From sequence record LC494302.1: DNA of 64,000 nucleotides; one strand, written 5' to 3'. The position numbers were made by a program, and so were the translations under genes. This document shows, in pieces, positions 1 to 64,000 of this stretch (the stretch's first letter is position 1; the number at the start of each line of letters is the position of its first letter). The notes beneath the pieces were generated by a model that saw only the letters and a list, made by a program, of their open reading frames with translations, did not search any database and had not been told where the DNA came from.

Positions 1-184
1 CACTATTTCAGTACTCACTAATTATAAAAGATGTATATGATCTTGAGTACTACAAAGAGTTAGTAGATATTTTTAAGAATACTCGACTTTCAAAAGATAT
101 TGTGATATTCTGGTATGTTGAGTATGTTACAGAGGAATTGCTAGAAGAATTTCTTCTAAATATGACAGCTATAAAGGAGAAGTT

Positions 185-658
185 ATGTTAGATATTTTAG
201 GAAACATCGACACTGCAAATTATTTTATTCAAGATGCATTGTTTAATACAGTACAACAAGGTTTAGAAGTTCACCACAATGTTTATCAGGGTGATGGATA
301 TTTTGTTGATATTATCGAGACACGTAAAAATACATTTAATGTTAACATTACGACGCTTGGAAGACAGAACATTGCACGAATTTTAGTAAGTAAAGATGAA
401 ATAGTACTGAGATACAGTGCTAAGTTTATGTTGACTTATAAGAAAAAAACTGATATGTTCAGTACTAATTTATTTGATGAGCCATTTGACCTTGAAGATA
501 TTGAAGCTACTTTCTTTACTCAAAGTACTATGGTAAAATACACTGATGTTCAATTTTCTGCTGATGTAATGTCAGAAACATTACAAATGATCAAGGTATT
601 ATTTTATGCATTTGAGCAATTTAGAGAAGAAAGAAACAAGGTTAACAACCACAGATGA
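185..658 (+). CDS. hypothetical protein (FQ-motif paralog family)
   Basis: 157 aa ORF, AAGGAG upstream; C-terminal EATFFTQSTM resembles the motif in neighbouring ORFs. Confidence 0.75.
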   Translation: MLDILGNIDTANYFIQDALFNTVQQGLEVHHNVYQGDGYFVDIIETRKNTFNVNITTLGRQNIARILVSKDEIVLRYSAKFMLTYKKKTDMFSTNLFDEPFDLEDIEATFFTQSTMVKYTDVQFSADVMSETLQMIKVLFYAFEQFREERNKVNNHR

Positions 659-1019
659 ACTAATAGAGGCGATCACTAAGGAGTCAAAATACCATAAAGG
701 GATTCGTCTATACTTTATAGATACTGGTTCGATGGAAGGTACATACATTTATGGTTCACAATCGTTGTCTTATGATGCAATGCCAAATAAACATGTTAAA
801 ATCTTTTTAGGTTCAAGTAATAAAACTTTCTTGACAATTAATGATAAAAACGTTATTATGAATTCGTTGGGTCATGATAAGGTGGAAATTGATCTAAACA
901 CGCTGGAGGATATTGATTTTTTTCAATACGAGTGTTTAGGTGTTGACTTACATGGCATTAGTAGCGATATGATAAAATCATTAATCAAATATTTCGAAGG
1001 TGTTCATAAATGTATCTAA
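606..1019 (+). CDS. hypothetical protein (FQ-motif paralog family)
   Basis: ORF overlapping both neighbours; DIDFFQYECL motif; true start may be downstream. Confidence 0.7.
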   Translation: MHLSNLEKKETRLTTTDELIEAITKESKYHKGIRLYFIDTGSMEGTYIYGSQSLSYDAMPNKHVKIFLGSSNKTFLTINDKNVIMNSLGHDKVEIDLNTLEDIDFFQYECLGVDLHGISSDMIKSLIKYFEGVHKCI

Positions 1020-1507
1020 CTAAATCAATGAAAAATTCATTTGATAAAATTAAGAGTTGTCTTGATGGAGAAAATATTACAAGTGTTACACAAACTGCTG
1101 ACCAAATTCAAAGCAGTTCAAGTGATTGCACTGTTATTTTTGGTTTACATAGTCTGCGTTTATCAATAGTAAATAATATTGACAACACTGCTATTGTAAT
1201 CACACCATGCAATATTCAAAATGAGAATGGTGTATATCTTCATCACATGGGAACAGTATTTCACATTTTCAATTCAAACGAAAACATTGTTAAGGAATAC
1301 AATACTCTTAATATTGATTCAGGTGAATTATTTCAAATGAGTACTTTGTACTCATGTAATTTTACAGATACTTCATGTATTTTGCCATTTTTCTTGGAAA
1401 TTATTAAGAAAATGGAAAATTTAAAACGTGAATACAATAAAGAAATGGTTCCTGAAGCTATATTAAATATTACTAATGCTATAGAGAAGTATAATGCAGT
1501 GACTTAA
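1010..1507 (+). CDS. hypothetical protein (FQ-motif paralog family)
   Basis: 165 aa ORF; GELFQMSTLY motif. Confidence 0.75.
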   Translation: MYLTKSMKNSFDKIKSCLDGENITSVTQTADQIQSSSSDCTVIFGLHSLRLSIVNNIDNTAIVITPCNIQNENGVYLHHMGTVFHIFNSNENIVKEYNTLNIDSGELFQMSTLYSCNFTDTSCILPFFLEIIKKMENLKREYNKEMVPEAILNITNAIEKYNAVT

Positions 1508-1549
1508 TAAAAACGCACATGGAGTGCATTAGAAGATCAAGGATAGATC

Positions 1550-2023
1550 ATGGAGATTAAAACTGTTGAAAATGGGAAAATTGATGACATTTTAGAGTTG
1601 GACGCATTCAAAGTTCATGATATAATGTTTAATGTGAAGGACATTATTCAATGTCTATTTTTGTGTAGCAAGACAATGCATGATTTTTTTCACAACCCAA
1701 ATACTAACGTTTTTATACTAACAATCAGTACTGAAAACTCGTTTATCATGGGTATGCCTATGAGTACAAATGAACAATATATTGATTGTGTTATTCGTAA
1801 TAACGATAGTATTACGCCACAATCTGAAGTACGTAAAAAGAAAAACACCTACACAATCAAAGATGATAAAATTATGATGTGCTGTAGTAAAGGGTTTATA
1901 TTAGATAATTTTATCGTAAAAGACAGTTATCACGACTTTAAAGTATCTGAAAATCAATCCAATGTAGTTCTTTATGCGAGTGACATAGAAAGTCTAACAG
2001 TTAAAGATCCTAGTTTGGAGTAA
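1550..2023 (+). CDS. hypothetical protein
   Basis: 157 aa ORF with AAGGA upstream. Confidence 0.75.
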   Translation: MEIKTVENGKIDDILELDAFKVHDIMFNVKDIIQCLFLCSKTMHDFFHNPNTNVFILTISTENSFIMGMPMSTNEQYIDCVIRNNDSITPQSEVRKKKNTYTIKDDKIMMCCSKGFILDNFIVKDSYHDFKVSENQSNVVLYASDIESLTVKDPSLE

Positions 2024-2025
2024 TT

Positions 2026-2157
2026 ATGTCGAAGAAAGTTAACAATTTCGTACAGAAACATATGAATGAGTTTAATAAACCTCAGACACATGTGGATCGT
2101 AAAAAAGAAATGAAAAATGGTAAAGTAAAACACAAGTCGAGATTTATTCTCGACTAA
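2026..2157 (+). CDS. small basic protein, 43 aa (not in ORF track)
   Basis: MSKKVNNFVQKHMNEFNKPQTHVDRKKEMKNGKVKHKSRFILD; GGAG upstream; resembles recalled small phage proteins of the 'N.VAK...FNK...H.DRKK' type. Confidence 0.7.
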   Translation: MSKKVNNFVQKHMNEFNKPQTHVDRKKEMKNGKVKHKSRFILD

Positions 2158-2163
2158 TTTTTT
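2135..2163 (+). terminator. intrinsic terminator overlapping the 3' end of the 43 aa ORF
   Basis: AGTCGAGA-tttat-TCTCGACT followed by a T-tract. Confidence 0.7.
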
Positions 2164-2180
2164 GTCTAAATTTATGAGGA

Positions 2181-3035
2181 TTGTATATGTTAGACATTTC
2201 AGATTTTCTTAATTTTAAAAAGTATTCAGTACTTGAACATATCAACGAATTTCTGAATTCTACTACACCATTTGGTATCAGTACATCAGATGCATACGAT
2301 GGATATACAATCTTCCCATACAATGACTTTCAAATTTCCGTCAAAAAAGGTTTTACAAAAGAAGTTGCAATTCGTGATGTAGTAATGTATAGCGATTCTT
2401 CTATTTCTTACTGTCATGATGTGAACAAGTTTGAATCTCTTGCAACACCTAATTGTTCATACTACAAATCACATGACACGATGATGTATAAAGAACAACA
2501 TATCAATGGTGTTTCGTTCTATAAAACTAGCAGTGATAAATCATATACATCTAGAGATGATTTTGGAAAATACACATGTACTATGCACACGGATAATGAA
2601 AAAACAAATTACACTCATTCATTCGAGTCCAAATTCCAAGAGAGTGAAGTTTCAAATATCACTATACAAGAACAGGTTTCAGAAGGCATTGTATATCGTA
2701 GCACTGCATTCTTTCGCATGAAAGATATTGCCACAGGCAGACCAATGATGTACAATATTGACATATACATGAAAGGTGATATATCCGAAGTAGTGATTAG
2801 TACTGGTTATCGTGAAAAATATACAGTTACAATGGAATCACCAGATGCATCATTAGTTCATCTCTTTAACAATTTATATACATTCCAATTCGAACTTAGT
2901 TTCGATCCAAATGAATATCAAATATTTGATATATTAAAAAGTAATATTATTAATAAGTTAGAATATTACTACAAGTTAGGTGGTAAGATGTGCATAGTTA
3001 ATACTATGTTACATAACATAAAAGAAACATTATAA
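2181..3035 (+). CDS. hypothetical protein
   Basis: 284 aa ORF, GAGG upstream. Confidence 0.8.
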   Translation: MYMLDISDFLNFKKYSVLEHINEFLNSTTPFGISTSDAYDGYTIFPYNDFQISVKKGFTKEVAIRDVVMYSDSSISYCHDVNKFESLATPNCSYYKSHDTMMYKEQHINGVSFYKTSSDKSYTSRDDFGKYTCTMHTDNEKTNYTHSFESKFQESEVSNITIQEQVSEGIVYRSTAFFRMKDIATGRPMMYNIDIYMKGDISEVVISTGYREKYTVTMESPDASLVHLFNNLYTFQFELSFDPNEYQIFDILKSNIINKLEYYYKLGGKMCIVNTMLHNIKETL

Positions 3036-3051
3036 ATCTGGAGGATTTGGT

Positions 3052-3345
3052 ATGGATACTAAATTCAAAATTATTTTTAAAACTAAGCCGTATATTCCAC
3101 ATACAGCAGAACGTTTTATACCACATGGTGCTGAGGAAATTATTCACCAAGATGGTACTAAGTTATACCTTGTTCCTTGTTCTTATGAACGTGCAGTAGA
3201 AATGTTACTAATGAATGCTAGACTATGCAAAAACAAGTACATTAGTTACCTATACAATGAACATATTTTAGATTTCAATGATGAAAATATGTTCATTCTA
3301 GCAATTGAGGATTTTGATAACTGGTACAATATTATTAAAATCTAA
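3052..3345 (+). CDS. hypothetical protein
   Basis: 97 aa ORF, GGAGG upstream. Confidence 0.75.
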   Translation: MDTKFKIIFKTKPYIPHTAERFIPHGAEEIIHQDGTKLYLVPCSYERAVEMLLMNARLCKNKYISYLYNEHILDFNDENMFILAIEDFDNWYNIIKI

Positions 3346-3356
3346 TGAAAATAATG

Positions 3357-3384
3357 TGAACATATTAGATTCTTGTGATATAAT
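3357..3384 (+). promoter_or_regulatory. extended -10 promoter (GRACA class) within a 10 bp inverted repeat
   Basis: TGAACA-N16-TATAAT with TG extension; ATGTGAACAT (3354-3363) / ATGTTCACAT (3383-3392) followed by a T-tract. Confidence 0.7.
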
Positions 3385-3417
3385 GTTCACATCTTTTTTT
3401 TGATAACGGAGATATAG

Positions 3418-3804
3418 ATGAATACAAGTTCAATCCTAAAAGCAATTGGTGGTGTTTTACTCATTGAAGTAAAAGGTGAACCAAAGCTATGCTGTTTAGA
3501 AGATATGAAGAATACAAAACACTTCAGTACTGGTCAGATTTTCAATGCCATTCGTATTCTAAATGACAAATCCATTGCTGATTATGGAAAAGTTTGGCCT
3601 GTATATCAAAATGCTGATGGTGATATCAGTACTGATTGGAAAACAATTGAGGCGGTACGACAAAGTTGTGAGAGTGATTGGGACTTCATTGTTGAAGTTT
3701 GTGATCAACTACAAGAAGATGTTCCAGAAATTGTCGAACGAAAAGAAGTCCTAGCACGACTTGAAAAATTCCGTCACGGAACACTACAGTATGACACAAT
3801 CTAA
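3418..3804 (+). CDS. hypothetical protein
   Basis: 128 aa ORF downstream of promoter, GGAG SD. Confidence 0.8.
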   Translation: MNTSSILKAIGGVLLIEVKGEPKLCCLEDMKNTKHFSTGQIFNAIRILNDKSIADYGKVWPVYQNADGDISTDWKTIEAVRQSCESDWDFIVEVCDQLQEDVPEIVERKEVLARLEKFRHGTLQYDTI

Positions 3805-3853
3805 TCTGCTTATTAAAAATATCTAATTAACATTATATAAAAGGAATTTAAAA

Positions 3854-4159
3854 ATGGAAGACAATGGAATGAAATTTGATATGTTTGAAGGTGTACCAGA
3901 GTTCGATTTCAATAAACTTGAAAATGGTGAAGAATCAGAACTAGTAAGTGTTACACTAAAATCAGATACCAAAAAGAAATATTCCCCATCAGTTCGTTCA
4001 CGTTCTCAAGAAGAATATGAAACCTTCATTGAGAGTATTCATTACGAAACGTTCCATCATGCAGATGGTACTCCGTATGAAGTTCGTGTTACAGTACTGA
4101 AGCCTGAAGTAAACCCAATGGAAAATCTACGTCCTGTTTACTGCTGGGCAAGCCACTAA
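3854..4159 (+). CDS. hypothetical acidic protein
   Basis: 101 aa ORF, AAGGA SD. Confidence 0.8.
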   Translation: MEDNGMKFDMFEGVPEFDFNKLENGEESELVSVTLKSDTKKKYSPSVRSRSQEEYETFIESIHYETFHHADGTPYEVRVTVLKPEVNPMENLRPVYCWASH

Positions 4160-4166
4160 TAAACCA

Positions 4167-4198
4167 AAGGACGGGATATAATATCTCGTCTTTTTTTT
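4167..4198 (+). terminator. intrinsic terminator
   Basis: AAGGACGGGAT-ataat-ATCTCGTCTT plus T-tract. Confidence 0.75.
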
Positions 4199-4210
4199 GT
4201 CTGGAGATAT

Positions 4211-5059
4211 ATGAAACTTTATCTAATCGTTGACTACAGTAAGGGTTATTATGACTACGCAGAAGAATCTGAAGGGTATTGCTCGTCTACTAATGTCAAT
4301 GTACGCACCAGTAGTACACATGAGCATGAATCTATTACAAACCTAAAAGATTTCATCGCATATCGAGCATTTGAAAAGAATTTCTGTCGTAGTAGATATT
4401 CGAAGTTTGAGTACCCGTTAATTGATGTTCCTGATGAATTGATGTTCCAGTTAATGCTCACTGGAGTACAAGATTATGATTACATCGCGTACAATCACAT
4501 TACTAAGAAAATTTATATCGGTACGTCAACACATGACATTTCTATGTATGCATCATGCCCCGATGATCGAATGAATGATAGAAAATCATACTATAGTGGT
4601 TCAGTTGGTTCAAATGATTCATTAAATGAAAATTTATTCTTTGAGTACGAGTTTGATAATCATCGAGGGAAAAAAGACCGAGAAGATTATTGTACTGAAA
4701 TTGATAGTACCAATGGATATGAAGAAGTGAAAGAAGCGATAATGCCATATATCCTTGACAAGTACTACAAAGATTTTCAGTACTGTAGTAATTTTCTAAT
4801 CCGAAATTCTATCATAATCGGTCGTCAAAGTACTGCATTCTCTAAGTACTACAATGATTCCCCTGTTGCTGAAAATGAAAACTGTAATATTCTCTCAATC
4901 CCACGTGAAGATATGGTATTCATGTTCACATCTTTCATTGAAGATGATGAGTTGTATGTAAAAAACAAGCACAGGTTCATGCCAAGTAAGATTGAGGTTA
5001 TGAGAAGCTTAAGTGCAGATATCTTAACTAATTTCACTGAAAAAACAGAATACAACTGA
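4211..5059 (+). CDS. hypothetical protein
   Basis: 282 aa ORF, GGAG SD. Confidence 0.8.
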   Translation: MKLYLIVDYSKGYYDYAEESEGYCSSTNVNVRTSSTHEHESITNLKDFIAYRAFEKNFCRSRYSKFEYPLIDVPDELMFQLMLTGVQDYDYIAYNHITKKIYIGTSTHDISMYASCPDDRMNDRKSYYSGSVGSNDSLNENLFFEYEFDNHRGKKDREDYCTEIDSTNGYEEVKEAIMPYILDKYYKDFQYCSNFLIRNSIIIGRQSTAFSKYYNDSPVAENENCNILSIPREDMVFMFTSFIEDDELYVKNKHRFMPSKIEVMRSLSADILTNFTEKTEYN

Positions 5060-5085
5060 GACATACCATAAGTTTATGATATAAT
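5058..5085 (+). promoter_or_regulatory. extended -10 promoter (GRACA class) upstream of ncRNA copy 1
   Basis: GAGACA-N16-TATAAT, TGA immediately before the -10. Confidence 0.65.
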
Positions 5086-5087
5086 GT

Positions 5088-5122
5088 AAGGTGACAGCAG
5101 AATATGTTGTCGCCTTTTTTTT
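5088..5122 (+). terminator. intrinsic terminator overlapping the promoter start site
   Basis: AAGGTGACAGCA-gaata-TGTTGTCGCCTT plus T-tract. Confidence 0.75.
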
Positions 5123-5134
5123 AATCCTGAAAGG

Positions 5135-5730
5135 TTCCATATGGAAATGATTAAAGCCTAATCCACTCGAAAAGTAGAGGGTAGATGAGTAGTCCTTTCA
5201 GTACGAACAGCAAATGAAACCCGTTAGATGATGGCATAGTTTGAACCACTCACGGCAATGCGGCTGTATAAAGAACTCCAATAGGATAAAGAGAGTTCCT
5301 CGATAGACATATAAGGATCGCACCTTACCAATTATCTAAGGGAGATTTCATGAGAAATTTGCGGTCGGAATTATACAATATAGTTGCGTCCAAATTTTGT
5401 GAAATCAAATACAAGTACTGGTCATATGGTATTTGTATTATGTGTCGGGATGTTTAAGACCGACGACCGTTGCTACAAGAACCGCGATAGAGAGAAACAG
5501 AGCAACCCGCTTTCGTCTCGTAAGAGAATTCGTGATATGAACTATGTGAAGGCCACCAGCGTCAAACTTTTTTGTTCTTTCCCCTGCGGGGGGATGAAAT
5601 ATGCTCAAGCAAACCCCGTCAATATTAATTAAAAGAAAATAGTACTTGTAGAATTAGACATGCGTAGCATGGTAATTCTACTGATGTTGATGAAATCAAC
5701 GTCACGTATATTCATTGATGTTTCCATAGG
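5135..5730 (+). ncRNA. large structured non-coding RNA, copy 1 (family unassigned)
   Basis: ~600 nt intergenic, GC-enriched; colinear conserved blocks with 60410-61030; compensatory helix GACGA/TCGTC versus AGCGA/TCGCT; 5'/3' closing helix TATGGAAA/TTTCCATA; ends approximate. Confidence 0.8.
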
Positions 5731-5737
5731 AATAATG

Positions 5738-6280
5738 ATGGCATTTATTAGAAAAGAAAAAACTGTTACTTATAAAACTTTGAATTTTGATGATTGCATT
5801 AATCAATCACAAGACGAAGATATCTTTACTGGATATGTGGTTATTAAAGAAAAAGGATGCATTTCTTATATAAAGGAATTGCAAAATGGAATTGAAGTGA
5901 CTTCAGTTAAATTACTTCCTACTCAAAAACCAACAATATCAAAAGCCCAGTATGGTAATTATTTTGAAGAAAGATATAGTAATAATTCAATAAGTGTTAA
6001 GGCTCATATTATTAAAGGAGAACTAGAAGGAGAATATAGAAAATACAACCCACAAGGAAAATGTGTTTGGGTTAAATACTTCAATTCAGGATATGATGTA
6101 ACATCTGAAATTATAGAGTTCTTAGGTTTAAAATGTACCCCTGAGACTATTCATGATTACAAGTTCAATACTGAAGAAGAGTTTAATCTGATGATGCGTT
6201 ACGGTTCACATTTTAAATTTTTATATGAATATAACATTGACAGTAGTACTTTTGATAAGATAGTACACAACTGTCTCTAA
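5738..6280 (+). CDS. hypothetical protein with a MORN-variant-like repeat
   Basis: GELEGEYRKYNPQGKCVWVKYFNSG; start moved to ATG 5738 behind AGGA because the track start (5660) lies in the ncRNA. Confidence 0.65.
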   Translation: MAFIRKEKTVTYKTLNFDDCINQSQDEDIFTGYVVIKEKGCISYIKELQNGIEVTSVKLLPTQKPTISKAQYGNYFEERYSNNSISVKAHIIKGELEGEYRKYNPQGKCVWVKYFNSGYDVTSEIIEFLGLKCTPETIHDYKFNTEEEFNLMMRYGSHFKFLYEYNIDSSTFDKIVHNCL

Positions 6281-6296
6281 CAAAAGGAATTATATA

Positions 6297-6818
6297 ATGT
6301 CGAAGAAGGATGCTTCGAAAAAACATTCAGTACATTTTAGTACTGGAAAAGATAACTGGACAACTCCAAAGGATTTCTTTGAAGATTTGGATGAACTCTG
6401 GGAATTTACACTAGATGCAGCATGTGTCAAAGAAACTGCATTGTGTGATAATTTTTTCACTCCAGAAGATGATTCACTGTCACAGGATTGGGGAAATAAT
6501 ATAGTTTGGTTGAATCCACCATATAGTGACTTGAAAACTTGGTTATCTAAAGCAGTAGATGCATATAATAACGGGGCAACTGTAGTTATTCTTGTACCCT
6601 CAAGAACCGATACAATTGCTTTTCAGGATTATGCTGCTAAAATATGTGATTGTATTTGTTTTATTAAGGGAAGATTGAGATTTGGTATACCAGAAGAACC
6701 CGATAAGAAAACAGATTCAGCACCATTTCCTTCGTGTCTGATAGTACTGGATAAGTACTTAACCACTGCTAAAATCAATTATCTTAAATCTCTTGGGTTG
6801 GTGATGAAGAATTTATGA
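6297..6818 (+). CDS. phage DNA N6-adenine methyltransferase (PF05869-type)
   Basis: WTTPKDFF, FTLDAAC, DSLSQDW, WLNPPYS, LVPSRTDT, FIKGRLRF, APFPS motifs. Confidence 0.92.
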   Translation: MSKKDASKKHSVHFSTGKDNWTTPKDFFEDLDELWEFTLDAACVKETALCDNFFTPEDDSLSQDWGNNIVWLNPPYSDLKTWLSKAVDAYNNGATVVILVPSRTDTIAFQDYAAKICDCICFIKGRLRFGIPEEPDKKTDSAPFPSCLIVLDKYLTTAKINYLKSLGLVMKNL

Positions 6819-7348
6819 AAGAAACATGCGTATTAACTTTTGGACGTGTTAATCCCGTACATCGTGGACATGGTTTAGTTTTTGAAAAGGCCAAAACATT
6901 ACAAGAACAGTACAATGCTGATTTAAAAATATATCTAAGCACCAGTACTGACAATATAAAAAACCCACTCCCACCTGAACTAAAAATGTATTATACAGAG
7001 GGATTCTATCCTTCAGTGCAAGAGAACATCTACACAGAAGACAATCTATTTGATATAATGAGAGAACTGGATGGAAAGTACTTAGATGTTCTTTTCATAT
7101 GTGGTTCTGACCGTATTGATTCTTTTCAAAAAACTCTTGACATGTACAATGGTAAGTTGTATAATTTTTGTAGTATAAAAGCAATTCAAGCAGGTATTGA
7201 CCGTAATGTAAGTCAATATAGCTCAACACAAATGCGTAACTTCGCAAAAAATGAAGATTTTGATAGTTTTCGTGAGTTTTTACCTGGAAATGACGAGGAC
7301 TTAAAAATACAATTATTTGAAGACGTTATAAAATACATGAGGAAATAA
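6815..7348 (+). CDS. cytidylyltransferase-like (HxGH nucleotidyltransferase)
   Basis: TFGRVNPVHRGH, KNPL, CGSDR, SSTQMR motifs as in T4-like phage cytidyltransferase-family proteins. Confidence 0.85.
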   Translation: MKETCVLTFGRVNPVHRGHGLVFEKAKTLQEQYNADLKIYLSTSTDNIKNPLPPELKMYYTEGFYPSVQENIYTEDNLFDIMRELDGKYLDVLFICGSDRIDSFQKTLDMYNGKLYNFCSIKAIQAGIDRNVSQYSSTQMRNFAKNEDFDSFREFLPGNDEDLKIQLFEDVIKYMRK

Positions 7349-7350
7349 TT

Positions 7351-7644
7351 ATGTCAGTACTGTTCAAAACCAATCCAGTACTTTGGGATCAAAATGAGCA
7401 ATCAGGATTTCGTTCCATCCATGTTGAATACAAAGGTAATACTGTAGTTGCAATTATTGCTAACAAAACTCTAGGAAACTGGACTGCACAGGTTGTTCCT
7501 ATGGGATATTCTTACACATCTGATGAGGTTCAATTCCTGGCTGAACTATATCGTCAAGTGCCGTTTATCATTAATGTACTAGAAGGTAATGATACATTAT
7601 CACATGCAGATGTGATTAATTTTCTTGGAAACTTGCATGTGTGA
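7351..7644 (+). CDS. hypothetical protein
   Basis: 97 aa ORF in operon. Confidence 0.7.
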   Translation: MSVLFKTNPVLWDQNEQSGFRSIHVEYKGNTVVAIIANKTLGNWTAQVVPMGYSYTSDEVQFLAELYRQVPFIINVLEGNDTLSHADVINFLGNLHV

Positions 7645-7924
7645 TGAAATAAATCTTACAGGATATTTTTTACAAGAATCAATGATTAAATTTAGTGATA
7701 AATTTTCAGTACTGGATGGTATCGAAATGTGGCATGTCAAACCACTGTTCCACACTTTCAGTAAAGAGCACAAAATGTTATTGACTGAAGCCAGTAAATC
7801 AAATAACATATGTGAAATCAAAATTGGTGTAAATGTCTATAAAGGGATGGTTATCTTTTTTGACAATAACAGCAACTACTTTTATATTGTTAAGGAGCAT
7901 TACGTTGACAAATACAAATACTAA
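7625..7924 (+). CDS. hypothetical protein
   Basis: ORF overlapping neighbours; start uncertain. Confidence 0.6.
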   Translation: METCMCDEINLTGYFLQESMIKFSDKFSVLDGIEMWHVKPLFHTFSKEHKMLLTEASKSNNICEIKIGVNVYKGMVIFFDNNSNYFYIVKEHYVDKYKY

Positions 7925-8519
7925 TACATATTTCCGTTATCTTCGCTTAGGTCTTTCCCTACGTCCGATCCGTGGAAAGTGCGATTCACTCGCTGACCTT
8001 GACTATGCATATGCATTACATCATGAAGGTGTACAGTATGTATTGGGTGATTATGGTGAATTTGAAGAAACAAATGACAGTACTGGAATTAATGCTGGTG
8101 TAGAAAATCTTAACAACATTGCTAACAGTTCTCGCCATGACATTGTGTTACAGATTCAAAACTTTATTGAGCAACACACAGGCAAACGTGTTTGGTGCTA
8201 TGTCGGTACTGATGCACAAATGTCAATTTCATTCGGTAACGATGAAGGATATGTTGCACAGCTTATTATGGATTTTGAATCTGAAGAGAAGTTTTTAGAA
8301 TTCAAAGAAAAGATTATTCAGTCACTTGTTGATATGGGTATCCCCGAAGATAAAATGCCAGAAGTCCAAAACATTGATGAATTTGTTTTGATTCCATCTG
8401 ATGAGAAATATGATGCAATGTTTACTGCTCTTAATATTCCAAGAGTTATTGTGGAGTACTTTGATGATGGTGATGATAGTATCTATATCGATCTAGATGA
8501 CGATGACGACGATGAATAA
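7905..8519 (+). CDS. hypothetical acidic protein
   Basis: probable TTG start at 7905 behind AAGGAG; poly-Asp C-terminus. Confidence 0.75.
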   Translation: MTNTNTNTYFRYLRLGLSLRPIRGKCDSLADLDYAYALHHEGVQYVLGDYGEFEETNDSTGINAGVENLNNIANSSRHDIVLQIQNFIEQHTGKRVWCYVGTDAQMSISFGNDEGYVAQLIMDFESEEKFLEFKEKIIQSLVDMGIPEDKMPEVQNIDEFVLIPSDEKYDAMFTALNIPRVIVEYFDDGDDSIYIDLDDDDDDE

Positions 8520-8524
8520 TGTAC

Positions 8525-8553
8525 ATAGCCCGACATAAGTTCGGGCTATTTTT
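8525..8553 (+). terminator. intrinsic terminator
   Basis: ATAGCCCGA-cataagt-TCGGGCTAT plus T-tract. Confidence 0.8.
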
Positions 8554-8565
8554 GTAAGGGGATAT

Positions 8566-29783: not shown

Positions 29784-30161
29784 TTAACCAGGGAGGTTAC
29801 AATAATACAAATCCCAAGGGTGATATTTCATCGCACCAGTACTCAATTTAATTTTATGAAACTGGAATGATTCGGCAAATGCACTATCGTCAATCTTAAT
29901 ACAAAAAGTGTTTTTGGCTAGAGTTGGTGCAATTTCCAATGCTGTTTTAGATGCATCTAATCTAATTTTATCTTTATCATAACTAGTGATAGTTACAAAA
30001 CGATAAACATTAAAATCAGTATCAATGAGATCGTAAACACAACTAGAACGTTGATTAAAGATGTTCAAGTTATATTTCAATTCACCGTTTATATTAGCTG
30101 CGGTTACACAAAACCCGCCGATATTGAATGGTAGTTTACCTTGTGCTGCGATAGCTTTCAT
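29784..30161 (-). CDS. hypothetical protein, only credible minus-strand gene
   Basis: 125 aa; AAAGGA SD on the minus strand; fills a gap with no + strand ORF; ends at the bidirectional terminator. Confidence 0.8.
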   Translation of the reverse strand: MKAIAAQGKLPFNIGGFCVTAANINGELKYNLNIFNQRSSCVYDLIDTDFNVYRFVTITSYDKDKIRLDASKTALEIAPTLAKNTFCIKIDDSAFAESFQFHKIKLSTGAMKYHPWDLYYCNLPG

Positions 30162-39496: not shown

Positions 39497-39541
39497 TATC
39501 AGTACTGTCATAGTGGCAGTACTTTTTAATTGGAGATTACT

Positions 39542-40156
39542 ATGACTACATCGGAAAAGTACTGGTGGATTTTGGGTCATCCTAAATTCATAAACAAAGA
39601 CATGGTTCCAGCTAGGATTGATATAGAACCTCATGATGTGTGTCCAATGACAAATCGAATTGAAGATTTTAAAGCATTGAATACAAAGACTCAATTTTGG
39701 GTAGAATTTCTTTCACCAATGTATATTGAGCAAGACGACGAATGGGTACAAGCACATGATTATCAATTGGATTGTGGTGGTGATACGTATGAAGAGGCGA
39801 TTGATAAATTATACAAAAATGTGCTAAACACATGTGGTGATTACACCCAACAAGAAGCAGATAACACATTTAATAAGATCCATGCATTCAAATCTACTCA
39901 ATCAATTTTTAATCCTACTAAAACTGTTTGGGAGGAACGACACAGTTGGAGTTCATGTGTAATCGATGAAGAAACCAAAGAAAAAATCATCGATGATATA
40001 AAAAATTTAAAAAATACGATAGAAGCCTTGCGTGAATTCATAATGTCTTGTACAATAGAACAAAAGAAAGAGGCAAAGATACATTTGGAGAGTGAAGAAT
40101 GTAAACTTTGGGTTCTAGAGAAATCTATTGAAAAGGGTATAGACTTAGACTTATGA
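39542..40156 (+). CDS. hypothetical protein
   Basis: GGAG SD; DCGGDTYEEAI. Confidence 0.78.
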   Translation: MTTSEKYWWILGHPKFINKDMVPARIDIEPHDVCPMTNRIEDFKALNTKTQFWVEFLSPMYIEQDDEWVQAHDYQLDCGGDTYEEAIDKLYKNVLNTCGDYTQQEADNTFNKIHAFKSTQSIFNPTKTVWEERHSWSSCVIDEETKEKIIDDIKNLKNTIEALREFIMSCTIEQKKEAKIHLESEECKLWVLEKSIEKGIDLDL

Positions 40157-54900: not shown

Positions 54901-54901
54901 T

Positions 54902-57691: not shown

Positions 57692-57692
57692 C

Positions 57693-57752
57693 TTGACATA
57701 GAAAAAGTAATTATGTATAATCAGAGAACTTCATATGGAGTTCTCTTTTTTT
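57693..57752 (+). promoter_or_regulatory. consensus sigma70 promoter overlapping an intrinsic terminator
   Basis: TTGACA-N17-TATAAT (57693-57721) then AGAGAACTTC-atat-GGAGTTCTCT plus T-tract. Confidence 0.8.
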
Positions 57753-57765
57753 ATAAGGTGATAAA

Positions 57766-58185
57766 ATGTTAAATGAACGTATTAAAAATGCACTACATGT
57801 ATTGAACCAAGAAGTAAATTCTATTGATAAAAGTACTGACCGTTATAAAGTAATGCATGAAATCAAACAAGAATTGGAATCTATTAATAAGGGAGAATGG
57901 TGGTATCTTCAGCCCGAATATCAAACTCGTGAATTAAACGATGTTGAAAAAGAAATTGTCAAATTCATCACTACTCGTTACTGTGATACATCAGAGAATG
58001 AGGTATCAGCGAACTTCAATCTTACTAAATTGGAAGTCGAAGAAAAATTCAATTTTGATTGGCTTGATTGGATTGAAATGGTCATGGAACTAGAAGAAAA
58101 ATTCAATGTTGAAGTTGATGAAAAGTTCGAGAATAATGAAACGAAGCTGTATGAACTAGTAGAACATATTCAAAAAATGTTGTAA
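57766..58185 (+). CDS. acyl-carrier-protein-like protein lacking the phosphopantetheine Ser
   Basis: FDWLDWIEMVMELEEKFNVEV aligns with ACP [21 protein letters not shown]; ~55 aa N-terminal extension. Confidence 0.75.
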   Translation: MLNERIKNALHVLNQEVNSIDKSTDRYKVMHEIKQELESINKGEWWYLQPEYQTRELNDVEKEIVKFITTRYCDTSENEVSANFNLTKLEVEEKFNFDWLDWIEMVMELEEKFNVEVDEKFENNETKLYELVEHIQKML

Positions 58186-58238
58186 AACTATACAATTGTA
58201 TACTCTAAATAATATCATCAACTATAGGAGATATTATT

Positions 58239-58613
58239 ATGAGTATGTTAGAAATAATTGTTTCAAAAATTCTTATTCCATTTTGGAAACCAATTTCTTT
58301 TGTATTATTAATTGGCGGTTCAGCTTATGCTGGTTGGGAAGCTAATACTTATTACAGTGGATATCAACAAAGCATAGAGCAACAAATAGCTAAAAAAGTT
58401 GATACCGCCTTGGATAAAATGCAACAAGAAAATGCAAAAAATTACCTTGAAACTAAAAAAATCATGGAAGATAATGCTAAAGTTATTGAAACAAAGGTTC
58501 CTTTTATTGTAGAACGTGAAGTTTATAAGAATGTATGTTTAGATGAAGATGGTGTAAAAGTACTGAATGAACTAAAACAAAATTCTCAAGCAGCGAGGAA
58601 TAAATTCAAATGA
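58239..58613 (+). CDS. i-spanin (Rz-like)
   Basis: N-terminal TM helix, coiled coil, VEREVYKNVCLDEDG; overlaps a lipoprotein gene. Confidence 0.72.
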   Translation: MSMLEIIVSKILIPFWKPISFVLLIGGSAYAGWEANTYYSGYQQSIEQQIAKKVDTALDKMQQENAKNYLETKKIMEDNAKVIETKVPFIVEREVYKNVCLDEDGVKVLNELKQNSQAARNKFK

Positions 58614-58918
58614 AAAAATTATTAGTTCCGTTTATTTCTTTTTTAATTATAAGTGGGTGTGCCGAACAAGTAAAACTACAATCCCCTGCACCAATTAAAC
58701 AAGAAATTCTGTTAGAAAGATGTGATGATGATACACCTCTACCACAAAAAATTATGATTGACAAAAATGGTTTTAAAGGTTATGATGGTGCAGAAATTCT
58801 TAAAGTACTTACTCGTTGGGATGCAGTCTACAATGAATGTGCTTTAAAACATGACGCATTGATTAAAACTATTCGTGATTTACAAGGTAAAGATATTAAA
58901 ATCAATATCAAGGAATAA
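58610..58918 (+). CDS. o-spanin (Rz1-like lipoprotein)
   Basis: lipobox ISGC, LLERC..PLP, YNECALKHDALI. Confidence 0.72.
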   Translation: MKKLLVPFISFLIISGCAEQVKLQSPAPIKQEILLERCDDDTPLPQKIMIDKNGFKGYDGAEILKVLTRWDAVYNECALKHDALIKTIRDLQGKDIKINIKE

Positions 58919-58919
58919 A

Positions 58920-59531
58920 ATGAACAAATATCATGTTTACTATACGACAAAATTATCACTTCTTGAAGAATTAAATCAACGAAGTACTAAGATGAAACGC
59001 TACACTTTAAATGGTATTACTTTTCGATATTTCCCACAAAAAGTTCTTACTTTTGTTAAGAATCCAAAATGCGTGGCATGTGGGATTGAAGCTACTGAAG
59101 TACGCATTGAACGTTCATTATGTTCTGATCCAGTATATGGTAAACCACATTTAAATGTATATGCTGTATGTGGTCTTTATGAAGTTTTAATGACAGTTGA
59201 CCATAATCATCTGGCATCTAAGGGTGGACCTGATTTAGAGTCAAACTTTAATACTATGTGCTCCAGATGTAATCAACTACGTTCGAATAAAACTGAAACA
59301 GTTGATGAGTTTCTTGAAAAAGTTAAAGGTCGTAATCTTCTCCAAGAACATATGAATAATTTCTTTAATGTACAAAAAAAGAAAAATAACATTGACAAGT
59401 CGAAACTACTAGAAGAACGTAGGTTACGTCAAGAATTATGGGAAACCGATCATCTATGGCATGTTCGAGAGTTTGGTCGTCATATGAAAGCTTTGAAAAA
59501 AGAACAGAAGAAATTGAATAAACATGATTGA
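58920..59531 (+). CDS. HNH endonuclease-like protein
   Basis: CVACG ... TVDHNHLASKGG...NFNTMCSRCN; start reassigned behind AAGGA. Confidence 0.8.
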   Translation: MNKYHVYYTTKLSLLEELNQRSTKMKRYTLNGITFRYFPQKVLTFVKNPKCVACGIEATEVRIERSLCSDPVYGKPHLNVYAVCGLYEVLMTVDHNHLASKGGPDLESNFNTMCSRCNQLRSNKTETVDEFLEKVKGRNLLQEHMNNFFNVQKKKNNIDKSKLLEERRLRQELWETDHLWHVREFGRHMKALKKEQKKLNKHD

Positions 59532-59572
59532 TATGATATTATAAGGACTTGAGTATTCAAGTCCTTTTTTTT
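59514..59572 (+). promoter_or_regulatory. promoter overlapping an intrinsic terminator
   Basis: TTGAAT-N17-TATTAT with TG extension, then AAGGACTTGA-gtat-TCAAGTCCTT plus T-tract. Confidence 0.65.
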
Positions 59573-59583
59573 GGAGAAAATAA

Positions 59584-59940
59584 ATGAAATCTAAAATCTT
59601 TTTACCACAATTAATGTGGCATCTAGCAGAGTTAGATGAAAATGATGAATTTACTGACTATGGTGCATGGGATGACAGTACTGAAACTTTTAAACCAGAT
59701 GTAAAATATAAAATCATCTACAATGAAAGCAAAGGGCACAGAAGGTGGACTGAAGAATTTGATCTCGTATTTCTTGACATGAGCACAAATAAGTTTTATC
59801 ATTGTACTTATGAACGAGGTTTAACAGAAGATAGACCAGTACAACCATTCAGTAATGAAACTGATGGTGTTAAGTGCAATGAAGTTTCTGTAACCAGAGA
59901 AGAAATTATCACTTATCGAACTTTGTGGAAATATTTGTAA
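59584..59940 (+). CDS. hypothetical protein
   Basis: 118 aa; GGAG SD. Confidence 0.78.
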   Translation: MKSKIFLPQLMWHLAELDENDEFTDYGAWDDSTETFKPDVKYKIIYNESKGHRRWTEEFDLVFLDMSTNKFYHCTYERGLTEDRPVQPFSNETDGVKCNEVSVTREEIITYRTLWKYL

Positions 59941-59941
59941 A

Positions 59942-60340
59942 ATGCTTAAAGAATTAGATTTTTCAAACTTAGAAATTATCAGTGCTGTAAAAAACATTTC
60001 CGATATGGGAGATGAGAAAGCAGTTCTTGTTACTATTACTTTTGTAAAAGAAAAAGATAGCTATAGCCATTTAACTGGTATTGAAGAACTAATTCATAAA
60101 ACCAATCTTGAGAATGATGGTAAACTCATCAAGCTTCAGGCTTCATATACGCAAAAAACGTCAAATTTTATAGACCTAAATAATGTAGTCAAGGTGGTAT
60201 ACAATCATCCTGAACACACATATAGGAACACGACAAGAAATGAAAATGTTGCTAACGATTCGAATATTATCGAAGATGTTGAATTCATAAACACAATTTT
60301 TGATCGTTGTTCTAAGGATTTAAAAAAAGTATACATGTAA
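59942..60340 (+). CDS. hypothetical protein
   Basis: 132 aa. Confidence 0.75.
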   Translation: MLKELDFSNLEIISAVKNISDMGDEKAVLVTITFVKEKDSYSHLTGIEELIHKTNLENDGKLIKLQASYTQKTSNFIDLNNVVKVVYNHPEHTYRNTTRNENVANDSNIIEDVEFINTIFDRCSKDLKKVYM

Positions 60341-60341
60341 T

Positions 60342-60369
60342 GGGACATTATATGTTCCAATGATATAAT
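60342..60369 (+). promoter_or_regulatory. extended -10 promoter (GRACA class) upstream of ncRNA copy 2
   Basis: GGGACA-N16-TATAAT; imperfect inverted repeat TGGGACAT/ATGTTCCA. Confidence 0.72.
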
Positions 60370-60409
60370 GTATATAGAAAATGACAACGGACATTGAAAA
60401 ATGGACACT

Positions 60410-61030
60410 GAGAACCTACTTCTCTTGAAAATGTAAAGGATAGATGAGCTTTACCGTTGTAGCGAACAGCAGAAGAAACCTGTTAGAGTACTGGCATTCA
60501 AACAAACACGATGTAAGACCACGAATCACGGCGACACGGCTGTATAAAGAACTCCGATAAGCATACAGAGAGTTCCTAGATAGATGTATAAGGTTCGCAC
60601 CTTACCAGATTTGCTAAGGGAGTTCAAGGATAGCGGACGCAATTTTTACAAGAAAGTTGCGTCCAAAATTTGAGAACAAGTACTACTTTGATCGAATAGA
60701 GTTAGTACTGAGTGCTGTTGATGAAAAGACCAGCGACCGTTGCATATGACTGCGATAGAGAGAAACCGAGCAACCCGCTTTCGCTCTCTAAATTTTGGTA
60801 CAAGAAAGATCCGTCCAAAATTTGAGAAATTCGCAATTCGATAATATCCGATGCCATCATCGTCAAGAGAGACTTAATTGTCTCTTTTTTATTACCTTCA
60901 TTCCCCTGTGGGGGGATGTAATAGTCCTCAACAAATCCCGTCAAGTTTTTAAAGTACATTATCATTTTCAGAAGGAACTAGTTTACGAAGTAAACGCAGT
61001 GACTTCTTGAGTTACGAGAGAACGAAGTGA
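60410..61030 (+). ncRNA. large structured non-coding RNA, copy 2 (family unassigned)
   Basis: colinear homology with 5135-5730; multiple hairpins; no credible ORF; ends approximate. Confidence 0.8.
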
Positions 61031-61459
61031 ATGAGTAACACAACGAAAATATCCGATAAATCCGAATTAACACAAATGTTATTCAAAGAATATTTTGAGT
61101 TTCAGATAAAAGACGAACATCAATTACCACAGCAATATTTGAAAAGAATTAAAGATCCGTCAGTAATTACTAAAGAAACTAATTTTTATAATAGTATTTT
61201 GGATTTCGTTAAATCAGTTCATACAACAAGACCTATTGTAGTTTTGTTTTTTGATAAATCTATTCCTTTAGTAGTTCCTGAAAATGTATTTTTTATTTCA
61301 GAAACTGATTTAAATAATCAAAGTACTGTAAGTAGATTAAGAAATTGCTTACTTGTAGTATGTGATTCTTCTTTGTATAATAACAGAATACTATGGGATA
61401 GAAGTAAACGCAATGCAGTTTCTGAAATGAATCCTGAAATTACCTTTATTATTAACTAA
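61031..61459 (+). CDS. hypothetical protein
   Basis: 142 aa. Confidence 0.7.
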   Translation: MSNTTKISDKSELTQMLFKEYFEFQIKDEHQLPQQYLKRIKDPSVITKETNFYNSILDFVKSVHTTRPIVVLFFDKSIPLVVPENVFFISETDLNNQSTVSRLRNCLLVVCDSSLYNNRILWDRSKRNAVSEMNPEITFIIN

Positions 61460-61491
61460 ATAATAAGAGAATAACTCTAAGGAGAGATATT

Positions 61492-61932
61492 ATGGAAGAT
61501 ATTAATGATTTACGACACGTAATGGACTTTATCGGAAGTACTGAAGAAGATAATTCGTATGATGAAGTACTATTAACTTTTATTGAAAATAGTTTGTTTT
61601 TAAGTTCTGCTGCACATAACTGGCACTTACAATGTCATTTTTATACAAAGCATTTACAATTAGATGAACTATATAAAGAATTACCAGAATATGTGGACGC
61701 ATTTGTTGAAGGTATCATGAATAATCGTGGTGCTTTACAAGTTGGAACTGGTAATAGTTATCGTTTTACACCAATTGAAGATTGTGTACCAATTCTTGAA
61801 GAATATGTTGAGCAATGTAGAGCAATTCATGATATGCTTGAAGAATCAGGTGATTACGGCAGTGTAAACACATTAGAAGATATTATGAGTTTTGTTGAAG
61901 GAACACTTTACAAACTTAAAGTTTTACAATAA
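61492..61932 (+). CDS. Dps/ferritin-like protein
   Basis: AHNWHL.....KHLQLDELY..L.EYVDAFVE; YKLKVL C-terminus. Confidence 0.82.
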   Translation: MEDINDLRHVMDFIGSTEEDNSYDEVLLTFIENSLFLSSAAHNWHLQCHFYTKHLQLDELYKELPEYVDAFVEGIMNNRGALQVGTGNSYRFTPIEDCVPILEEYVEQCRAIHDMLEESGDYGSVNTLEDIMSFVEGTLYKLKVLQ

Positions 61933-61939
61933 AATATAT

Positions 61940-61969
61940 GGAGAGTCATTGTGACTCTCCTTTTCTTTT
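61940..61969 (+). terminator. intrinsic terminator
   Basis: GGAGAGTCA-ttg-TGACTCTCC plus T-tract. Confidence 0.8.
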
Positions 61970-61980
61970 GGAGAAATAAA

Positions 61981-62598
61981 ATGAAATCTCATGATTTAGC
62001 AAAATTACTACTATCTCAACCAAATCTAGAAATTTATCATTATGATGCAGAGAGTGACTTGCATTATCAGAATTTTGATAATAAATTAATGGTCACCCCA
62101 TCTGGCATTTTCACAACGGTAAAACCCACATCAGTTTCTGAAAATGTACTTACACCATACGAAACCCCGCTCTTGGGTCATGTACAAATTTTCTTTAAGG
62201 ATGGTACTATTACTCCAAAATTGGAGGGTTCATCTATTCAAACTGTTCTTAACTTAGAATCTGGGTTGATATTTAACATTCCTTATGAAAAGCCAATTGT
62301 TTTATTAGGTAAAAATCAATCAGCACCATCAGGGAATCAAAATGCTGTTTGGTATACACCCGATGATATTGATTTCATTTCAGTACTGACAGAATATGAT
62401 CCTAATACTTGGCATGAAACATGGGAAAATATGTCATATGATGAAGCAATTGAATGTGGTAAAAATTTAGCCAAAATGTTATTTCCACAAAAAGAAGAAC
62501 TTTCACAAGAACAAATTGATTCATTTTCTAAAGATTTTCCTGATTCTGAATTCAATGTAAAAGTATCACCTTCTATGATTGATAAAATTGAAAAATAA
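61981..62598 (+). CDS. hypothetical protein (paralog of 63334-63918)
   Basis: MKSHDLAKLLLSQP...VTPSGIF...YTPDD. Confidence 0.8.
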   Translation: MKSHDLAKLLLSQPNLEIYHYDAESDLHYQNFDNKLMVTPSGIFTTVKPTSVSENVLTPYETPLLGHVQIFFKDGTITPKLEGSSIQTVLNLESGLIFNIPYEKPIVLLGKNQSAPSGNQNAVWYTPDDIDFISVLTEYDPNTWHETWENMSYDEAIECGKNLAKMLFPQKEELSQEQIDSFSKDFPDSEFNVKVSPSMIDKIEK

Positions 62599-62604
62599 AA
62601 GAGG

Positions 62605-62964
62605 TTGAACATGAGTGATTACCGCGTAACATCTGGACTAATGGCCCGTCTTATTGAAGCAGTTCCTGAAGATGATTATGAAGCTATTTCAGATCGTCTT
62701 TTTGACGCAGATTCTAAACTCCATATTACATATGATGGTGCATTGATTTACAGTACTGATATTGATATGTCTAGTTATGAATTTGAGATTTCTTTTGGTA
62801 ACAAACTAACTACTGAAGAATTCGCTCAAAAATGTGAGCGTGAAGGGTTGTGTATTGATATTAGTTCAGTTCAGCCATATACATCACTGTGGTATGATGG
62901 TGCTGATAGTCCAATGTCTACTACATCTTTACAGGATTTTCTAAATGCAAATCAAAAAGATTAA
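62605..62964 (+). CDS. hypothetical acidic protein
   Basis: 119 aa; GAGG SD; YNGADSP-like WYDGADSP. Confidence 0.75.
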   Translation: MNMSDYRVTSGLMARLIEAVPEDDYEAISDRLFDADSKLHITYDGALIYSTDIDMSSYEFEISFGNKLTTEEFAQKCEREGLCIDISSVQPYTSLWYDGADSPMSTTSLQDFLNANQKD

Positions 62965-63337
62965 ATTCCACCAGCATTGTTCTATACATGAATGTGATGA
63001 TTGTGGTATACAAATGAGTGACATTTATACAGTTTCCTGTAAAGGTTTCAAATTCACTCACGGTGAACCTGCTTATTGTTATGGTACAGAAGAAGGTGAT
63101 ATCGAAGTAGTACTGAAAGAATTGTTCCAATACTTGCAAAGTGTAGGTCATGATGTTACAATACCCACATATTATGAAGATGATTATGATGCACATGTAG
63201 AAGAAAATACATATTATAATCAATTCGTTTATGGTAATGGTTTTATCACATACCTACATGAGAATGGTATTGAGGTAAAAACTAAGTACACCAGTGATGA
63301 TTATGATGATGATAATTCTATGGAGATTGAAGATTGA
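62945..63337 (+). CDS. hypothetical protein with possible zinc site
   Basis: HECDDCG ... H..AYC. Confidence 0.7.
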   Translation: MQIKKIKFHQHCSIHECDDCGIQMSDIYTVSCKGFKFTHGEPAYCYGTEEGDIEVVLKELFQYLQSVGHDVTIPTYYEDDYDAHVEENTYYNQFVYGNGFITYLHENGIEVKTKYTSDDYDDDNSMEIED

Positions 63338-63918
63338 AAGCAAAAGACTTAGCAGCACTGTTGTTGCAGAATCCTGAAATGGAAGTGTATCATGAGCACA
63401 TGCACATTGATGACATGTGTGACGCTTACTATTCACCAGAAAATGTGTCTGGTATTGAAATTACCCCTAGTGGAGTATTCATCAGTACTGAACGTATTGA
63501 TTATAATTCCCAGCAAGAAATCAAAACTCCACATAATAAACCTCGCATTGGTACAATTGACCTAGTATTTCATCAGGACCGTTTGGTGGAATATGATGAA
63601 GACGATGGTACTACCCGAACTGATGTTGAGAATGTTGTTTTTCGTTTTTATAATGCATACGAAGACCCAACTACTGGAGAAGATTTCTTCCGTGAGCTAT
63701 TAGAGGATGGAGAAGTTTATGGTCAGGATGGTACGGTTTTTGTACTGGACCCTAACTATGAGCCAGATCACAATACATGGCAATTCTATACACCAGAAGA
63801 TGTAATGGAAGTTAAAGTACTTATCGATATTGACGATAAATGGAATCCTATGTATACTTCAATGACATATGAAGAAGCCAAAGAATACTTCGTTTCTAAA
63901 CTAAACATTACAAAATAA
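63334..63918 (+). CDS. hypothetical protein (paralog of 61981-62598)
   Basis: MKAKDLAALLLQNP...ITPSGVF...YTPED. Confidence 0.8.
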   Translation: MKAKDLAALLLQNPEMEVYHEHMHIDDMCDAYYSPENVSGIEITPSGVFISTERIDYNSQQEIKTPHNKPRIGTIDLVFHQDRLVEYDEDDGTTRTDVENVVFRFYNAYEDPTTGEDFFRELLEDGEVYGQDGTVFVLDPNYEPDHNTWQFYTPEDVMEVKVLIDIDDKWNPMYTSMTYEEAKEYFVSKLNITK

Positions 63919-64000
63919 TAAGGATTCACAAATTTATGAAAATTGTTGCAAGTGCATGGATGAAACTACCAGATGGTACAACTGCTTTTGAAGAATATGG

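Follow-up and report, generated by a model that had tools for sequence, protein, structure and literature searches.

The question raised by the stretch of DNA described here is why a jumbo phage carries one short palindrome, AGTACT, at very high density when phages usually purge palindromes and avoid restriction sites. This stretch, which we call the window, is 64,000 bp long and is an exact match to positions 186001-250000 of Escherichia phage SP27 (LC494302.1), an Asteriusvirus of 347 kb that is a Rak2-like jumbo myovirus, so the original prediction, which was made from the letters of the sequence alone, was right in taking it for a jumbo phage. The window is annotated with 114 complete genes, two of them on the minus strand. 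An exact count gave 183 AGTACT sites, that is one per 350 bp, where a count by hand had given about 180. At the GC content of the window (33.3%) base composition leads to an expectation of 21.5 sites, and 100 dinucleotide-preserving shuffles gave 17.2 ± 4.0 sites, never more than 28. No hexamer in the window is as frequent as AGTACT, all other 6-bp palindromes are at or below 1.9 times their expectation, and the permuted hexamers ACTAGT (11 copies), TGTACA (26 copies) and AGATCT (5 copies), which had been named beforehand as controls, are not enriched. A maximal-order Markov model gave an expectation of 150 AGTACT in the window, and it was rejected as a null because its nested pentamers AGTAC and GTACT are inflated by AGTACT itself and carry the hexamer's own excess. 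What we conclude from these data and from those that follow is that AGTACT is very probably a genome-wide iterated DNA signal of one phage clade that is kept by selection on the DNA itself.

When synonymous codons were shuffled within each gene, 41.0 ± 5.6 AGTACT sites were retained compared to the 170 observed in coding sequence (z = 23), so the excess stays under a protein-preserving null. When synonymous codons were pooled over genes and then shuffled the number was 33.4 ± 5.3, and when the order of the codons was shuffled it was 23.2 ± 4.7. The extended form of the motif, CAGTACTG, occurs 40 times in coding sequence compared to 2.8 under the protein-preserving shuffle. AGTACT sites fall in every one of the three codon phases (82/30/56), 172 of the 183 sites are in coding sequence and 11 are truly intergenic, and the density is about equal in the two, being ~2.9 per kb in coding and ~2.7 per kb in intergenic DNA. 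It had been claimed from the letters alone that the sites occur in every phase and between genes and that the signal is therefore at the level of the DNA and not an effect of codons or proteins, and both the shuffles and the intergenic density agree with this. A site had also been placed in a lone minus-strand gene; the site is there, but there are two such genes with one site in each. The sites said to be in both ncRNAs could not be verified as neither ARAGORN nor Rfam gives an RNA gene in the window. Of the 41 genes of at least 500 nt, 40 have at least one AGTACT, the counts per gene are Poisson-like, and the spacing of the sites, with its mean of 350 bp, is roughly Poisson as well. The flanks are palindromic, with C at -1 in 45% and G at +1 in 49% of the sites, T-rich from -2 to -4 and A-rich from +2 to +4, and the left and right flanks vary independently. 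The motif has skewed the dipeptide content of the phage proteins. The dipeptides S-T, V-L, and Q-Y are 1.54-1.61 times over-represented in the proteins of the window whereas the reversed dipeptides T-S, L-V, and Y-Q are at 0.79-0.98 times, and 83 of the 136 S-T pairs are written AGT-ACT when 19 would be expected by codon usage.

That the motif is selected, as the original prediction had proposed, is indicated by its conservation. A 25-kb part of SP27 (window positions 14000-38999) was aligned with 121Q, UE-S1, and Ecwhy_1, which are 94.5%, 89%, and 83% identical to it, respectively. AGTACT was kept in 89%, 73%, and 75% of cases in these three phages compared to 78%, 61%, and 43% for phase-matched control hexamers. 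The divergence from Ecwhy_1 at third codon positions was 11.2% inside the motif and 31.2% outside it (p = 2.5e-7), and the changes that could be polarised were roughly balanced, with 12 gains and 17 losses. Between genera at ~50% amino acid identity, 14-30% of the SP27 sites are at exactly homologous codons, when independent placement would give ~0.15 shared sites; the remaining sites have turned over between genera while the density stays steady at ~3-4 per kb. In the alignment with 121Q, UE-S1, and Ecwhy_1, AGTTCT was the commonest state where AGTACT had been gained or lost. It is the main evolutionary route by which the motif arises and is lost, because a change of A4 to T is conservative in all frames (Thr to Ser, Tyr to Phe, and Val unchanged), and since this explains AGTTCT better, a sequencing error related to modification was set aside.

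The whole genome of PBECO4 (NC_027364), which is 99.5-99.7% identical to SP27, has 891 AGTACT compared to 118 expected, and it is the commonest hexamer there too. More distant relatives were compared through 40-kb syntenic pieces, namely those of Klebsiella phages KP13-7 and K64-1, Cronobacter phage GAP32, Xanthomonas phages XbC2 and XaC1, an Erwinia Eneladusvirus, and Salmonella phage Munch. In the Rak2-like relatives sampled (Alcyoneusvirus, Mimasvirus, Eneladusvirus, Munch, and XaC1) AGTACT was at 8-11.5 times its expectation. By z-score AGTACT came first in six pieces, and in the two from Klebsiella it was second or third. The richest relative sampled was XaC1, with 158 AGTACT compared to 13.7 expected; its prohead protease is 45% identical to the SP27 counterpart. 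In the outgroups, Pseudomonas phage MIJ3 had 1, Agrobacterium phage Atu_ph07 had 2, and an uncultured 642-kb phage (LR756502) had 13 AGTACT, each compared to 13.6 expected. Since the relatives are enriched and the outgroups are without excess, the AGTACT excess is, on these sequence comparisons, a shared derived character of the Rak2-like clade. In MIJ3 and Atu_ph07 AGTACT is depleted ~7-14 fold, which is opposite to the Rak2-like clade. Which bases are preferred in the flanks depends on the genus: C..G in Asteriusvirus and Alcyoneusvirus, A..T in the others. In E. coli DNA, of which 50 kb were sampled, there were 0.22 AGTACT per kb compared to 2.6 in the phage, and with this contrast of ~12-fold the motif could discriminate phage DNA from host DNA. 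Our literature searches gave no earlier description of an excess of AGTACT in these phages, and no methylome or ScaI digest of them.

The highest density of the motif, ~6 AGTACT per kb, was found in a ~24-kb block of small early genes of the Asteriusvirus. Early blocks of this kind are at 132.6-158 kb in PBECO4, 128-153.5 kb in SP27, 230-244 kb in K64-1, and 1-24 kb in Erwinia phage pEa_SNUABM_12. In all four phages the early block has a higher GC content of 0.36-0.40, strong sigma-70 promoters, and ~6-8 AGTACT per kb, and those of K64-1 and the Erwinia phage are as dense in AGTACT as that of the Asteriusvirus. A direct terminal repeat of 20,993 bp has been demonstrated in fEgEco12 (PMC13070987), and because size and position match, the early block probably corresponds to a direct terminal repeat of ~21 kb that has been collapsed in the 348-kb assemblies. 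There are 52 strict promoters (TTGACA-N16-18-TAnAAT) in PBECO4, 50 of them on the gene strand, and in 12 of the 52 AGTACTG abuts the -10 hexamer, always at the same offset. A second AGTACT is 21-22 bp away, at or just upstream of the -35 hexamer, both in Asteriusvirus and in the Erwinia Eneladusvirus, and from their arrangement in the sequence these paired sites look like an operator. The fixed distance to the -10 and -35 elements holds for this subset of promoters and not for the genome-wide motif, and no strict sigma-70-type promoter bearing AGTACT was found in the 64-kb window.

Adjoining the early block, and outside the window, the motif takes a different form. PBECO4 has two stretches free of AGTACT, of 7.7 kb and 5.6 kb, for which the chance probabilities are 3e-8 and 3e-6, respectively, and they flank a 2.6-kb piece with normal dense AGTACT. 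The first stretch (SP27 ~160,600-168,300; PBECO4 116,608-124,301) is just inside the left terminal repeat of Asteriusviruses. In PBECO4 it has 44 AGTACA in the orientation of the genes compared to 2.7 expected (~16-fold) and none at all in the reverse orientation. This 7.7-kb block is conserved in SP27, PBECO4, 121Q, and Ecwhy_1, the last of which is 78% identical there, and since all four have it a sequencing artefact was rejected as its source. SP27, 121Q, and Ecwhy_1 have 38-42 sense AGTACA in the block and just 1-5 AGTAC in which the next base is C, G, or T, and antisense AGTAC is depleted to 0-1 compared to 6-7 expected. The AGTACA sites are spread over the codon phases (15/14/12) and their flanks stay symmetric, with C at -1 in 48% and G at +1 in 38%. 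Between SP27 and Ecwhy_1 about half of them have turned over, their number remains at 38-44, and none has become AGTACT. The second stretch (SP27 ~153,700-158,000; PBECO4 126,954-132,598) is of opposite polarity and weak, with 6-13 TGTACT and almost no sense AGTAC; it is an array of ~19 tandem small paralogous genes of ~70 amino acids each. No polar block was seen in the regions sampled of K64-1 and the Erwinia phage, and a Pfam scan of ten proteins of the polar block gave no informative match. An asymmetric word with the orientation bias that is typical of Chi is thus seen in the Asteriusvirus block and not in the window.

The block in one orientation means that each strand is read separately and that what is read is AGTACW. 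This strand-specific hexamer is the functional unit, in this genus with a preference for C on its left and G on its right, and AGTACT, being self-complementary, displays it on both strands at once. The original prediction had not included the strand-specific reading, the place of the motif in early promoters, or its being a trait of an entire phage clade. Its reader is most likely encoded by the phage because the motif is constant while the hosts span E. coli to Xanthomonas. The explanation that we favour, and which we hold tentatively, is that phage DNA is marked by a two-fold symmetric DNA-binding protein of the phage, which is also active at early promoters. Such a symmetric, sequence-specific protein would dock on AGTACT sites and, by their higher density in the phage, would mark its DNA; at the early promoters of the terminal repeat it would serve as an operator protein on the pairs of sites, one at or just upstream of -35 and the other abutting -10. 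That a protein binds to the sites, and what it does there, we infer from the enrichment, the conservation, and the positions described above. Several points weigh against this explanation. No AGTACT-binding protein was identified, and apart from a small bump at 20-24 bp, which is due to the promoter cassettes, the short-range spacing of AGTACT is without helical phasing. About 730 of the PBECO4 sites are outside the early block and 172 of the 183 sites in the window are in coding sequence, so regulation alone is insufficient. A symmetric dimer alone does not explain the polar block either, which is easier to reconcile with an enzyme that reads a single strand or travels along the DNA, and a reading of the same facts by methylation stands beside that of a docked protein.

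According to this second explanation, a serious rival although on balance unlikely, a phage methyltransferase modifies AGTACW and the lattice of sites is an epigenetic self-mark by which phage and host DNA, or parental and new DNA, are told apart; the mark would serve a phage nuclease, repair, or methylation-sensitive early promoters, and the polar block would be hemi-methylated by design. The flip of the outer T:A pair in AGTACA moves an adenine between the strands, which is in keeping with this. Promoters with methylatable sites at -10 and -35 are a known control device of Dam, and HIP1, a hyper-abundant palindrome of cyanobacteria, correlates with methyltransferases. To our knowledge, however, orphan methyltransferases do not as a rule have enriched targets. 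Genes for a small Dam-family methyltransferase and a C5 methylase are present in PBECO4. The small Dam-family gene is the sole methyltransferase gene present in all the AGTACT-rich genera sampled, and in every one of them it is syntenic together with a neighbouring nucleotidyltransferase gene. The DNA of RaK2, XaC1, and XbC2 has been shown to resist some restriction enzymes (PMC3622015, PMC11273794). Against this, M.Phi93DAM, which is the nearest characterised relative of the small Dam protein, methylates GATC (PMC4190342), and the small Dam family of jumbo-phage subgroup 2.2, which is probably that of the window, may even act on RNA according to Iyer and colleagues (PMC7824862). Homologues of the C5 methylase are found in rV5-like phages and ICP1; this enzyme was dropped as the reader because bisulfite data from RaK2 suggest that C5 methylation is in CpG context (PMC3622015) and because the methyltransferases reported for XaC1 do not include it (PMC11273794). 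A S-adenosylmethionine-dependent methyltransferase of XbC2 has no homologue in PBECO4 and was dropped as well. The DNA of fEgEco12 was cut as predicted by ten enzymes, ScaI not being among them (PMC13070987), and this normal cutting indicates that there is no bulk base replacement. When the annotated methyltransferases and nucleases were searched against Pfam, PF05869, PF00145, HNH, and T5orf172 alone were obtained, and no pair of ScaI-like enzymes was found among them. With a C5 enzyme that seems to act at CpG and a Dam-family enzyme whose nearest characterised relative is one for GATC, no methyltransferase could be tied to AGTACT, and the link to one that the original prediction had drawn finds no clear support.

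A third explanation, also a serious rival, is that AGTACW is a strand-read signal for a moving enzyme of replication or recombination, either the start site of a T4-type primase or a Chi-like word for a helicase-nuclease. The palindrome would serve forks or nucleases coming from either side and the polar block would be a zone of fixed direction by the left terminal repeat. Such a signal best explains the polar block, in which the strict orientation of AGTACA has been maintained in three lineages down to 78% identity and in which sites turn over while their numbers stay constant; the neighbouring block of opposite polarity, with the two diverging from the 2.6-kb centre, is also in its favour. 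As an account of the motif as a whole we regard it as unlikely, and its fuller form, in which AGTACW is a strand-read code (a primase word or a phage 'Chi') and the polar block is a fixed-direction zone around an origin or processing site, as rather doubtful. Primases start at GTT in T4 and at GTC in T7, and the central GTA of the motif resembles such GTN triplets; the spacing of one site per 350-390 bp is similar to that of the pentamer primase sites of T7 and of a 5-mer Chi. We know, however, of no DnaG-type or gp61-type primase that is specific for a hexamer. The symmetry of the flanks persists within the polar block, which points to the recognition of duplex DNA. Analysis of repeats, promoters, and skew in the 2.6-kb centre gave no decisive feature of an origin, and the skew shifts there without a change of sign. 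The lack of the block in K64-1 and the Erwinia phage, in the parts of them that were sampled, also speaks against this explanation.

Could AGTACT be functionless and be made by a neutral molecular drive, such as biased repair of the very short patch (VSP) type or gene conversion? A drive of this kind would also conserve synonymous positions, it was once proposed for HIP1, and several apparent two-step gains were seen over short divergence. It is nevertheless very improbable. None of the one-mismatch neighbours of AGTACT is depleted in five phages, the transition neighbours AATACT/AGTATT being at 1.0 times and AGCACT/AGTGCT at 1.8 times their expectation, and this argues against a VSP-type repair drive, so VSP-like conversion was rejected. 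The fixed positions at promoters, a regional polar variant that avoids the other orientation, and the flank preferences specific to each genus are also left unexplained by a drive. Least probable by far is a by-product of codon and dipeptide usage or of sites for the host protein SlmA, for although AGT and ACT are much used (for 34% of Ser and 42% of Thr) and the SlmA site, GTGAGTACTCAC, has an AGTACT core, the within-gene synonymous shuffle and the equal intergenic density argue against the former, the SlmA-type flanks are disfavoured in the window (GTnAGTACTnAC has no match and GAGTACTC has 1 compared to 5 expected), and the trait is present in Xanthomonas phages too.

The system that AGTACT resembles most closely in its distribution is HIP1 (GCGATCGC), as had been suggested from the letters alone. 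Both are short palindromes in far excess that occur about once per gene, in all frames and between genes, both are conserved across genomes above background, and the function of both is unknown. HIP1 is conserved between genomes beyond background, which indicates that it is selected and not neutrally replenished (PMC5861425). The differences are that HIP1 is found in cyanobacterial cells and AGTACT in a virus, that the excess of HIP1 is 15-300 fold compared to 7.5-11 fold for the AGTACT hexamer, and that AGTACT is without a known cognate methyltransferase and without short-range periodicity but has a conserved polar one-strand block and fixed positions in early promoters. Like Chi, KOPS, and USS/DUS, AGTACT is a word of 'self' that is found genome-wide in coding sequence and is denser in self DNA, and the Asteriusvirus AGTACA block shares the strict orientation of Chi and KOPS; unlike these words, AGTACT is palindromic over most of the genome and hence without polarity, and no helicase-nuclease, translocase, or uptake receptor has been linked to it. 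TF1 of SPO1 is a phage DNA-binding protein that tells phage DNA from host DNA, and its strongest sites overlap early promoters in the long terminal repeat. The likeness to AGTACT is in this discrimination and in the preferred sites at terminal-repeat early promoters; the difference is that TF1 recognises hydroxymethyluracil DNA and not a hexamer. A homologue of TF1 or HU did not turn up, although no systematic search for one was made. In T7 the EcoP15I sites (CAGCAG) are all in one orientation, by which restriction is evaded, and the word is not enriched; AGTACA is likewise an asymmetric hexamer with its copies all the same way, but it is enriched 16-fold and is confined to the 7.7-kb block. 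Lastly, AGTACT has the same six base pairs as the target of a ScaI-type restriction-modification system, whereas restriction sites are what phages avoid. The avoidance of palindromes in the window is extreme: 27 of the 64 six-bp palindromes are at zero copies, GCGC occurs 0 times compared to 47 expected, GGCC and CCGG are at ~0.2 times, and GATC and CTAG are at ~0.5 times their expectation.

The features of the window that have been referred to, together with clusters and intergenic groups of sites, are collected in the table. The conserved phrog_16210 gene next to the small Dam-family gene had no match in Pfam, the PDB, or among solved structures. The DUF5856 protein of 146 amino acids has weak similarity to ferritin/Dps (E = 2e-4 to 0.02 with the Dps family in the PDB) and is labelled 'starvation-inducible transcriptional regulator' in PHROG; from this similarity it is possibly a Dps-like protein of the phage. 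A short word, GTTGCGTCCAAA(A)TTTTG, is common to the two largest intergenic gaps, in which it lies ~10-20 nt upstream of an AGTACT site (at 5380-5420 and 60650-60685); apart from this word the gaps do not align.

Table. Positions of AGTACT sites and of neighbouring genes in the 64,000-bp window of SP27
Feature	Position	Strand	Remarks
AGTACT lattice	1..64000	.	183 sites, 43 of them CAGTACTG
Densest cluster, 4 AGTACT in 90 bp	4761..4850	+	inside coding sequence 4211-5059
AGTACT at 5414 and 5641	5414..5646	.	in the 678-nt intergenic gap 5060-5737
phrog_16210 gene	5738..6280	+	always directly upstream of the Dam-family methyltransferase gene in relatives
Small Dam-family N6-adenine DNA methyltransferase, candidate modifier	6297..6818	+	PF05869, NPPY motif
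Cytidylyltransferase-like nucleotidyltransferase	6815..7348	+	always adjoins the methyltransferase in sampled relatives
AGTACT site	29838..29843	-	in minus-strand gene 29784-30161
Two intergenic AGTACT, 17 bp apart	39501..39523	.	just 5' of the coding sequence starting at 39542
AGTACT at 60487, 60679, and 60704	60487..60709	.	first two in gap 60341-60701; 60704 in minus-strand gene 60702-60959
DUF5856 protein	61492..61932	+	weak ferritin/Dps similarity

It is contrary to the rule that one palindrome should be the commonest hexamer in a phage that has purged so many others. AGTACT has been preserved across a deep clade with hosts as different as E. coli and Xanthomonas, and the selection for it bends proteins. 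This implies a conserved, sequence-specific part of the DNA biology of jumbo phages, be it marking, compaction, regulation, priming, or protection. The density of the motif is also a simple signature by which Rak2-like phage DNA could be recognised in metagenomes. Palindromes of the HIP1 type have been an open question for decades, and here such a palindrome is found in a phage of E. coli that grows on strain K-12 and has ~900 sites that can be recoded, with the polar block and the promoter pairs as concrete starting points for experiments. If the explanation by a strand-read code of replication or recombination were true, AGTACW would be the first genome-wide word of this kind to be encoded by a virus.

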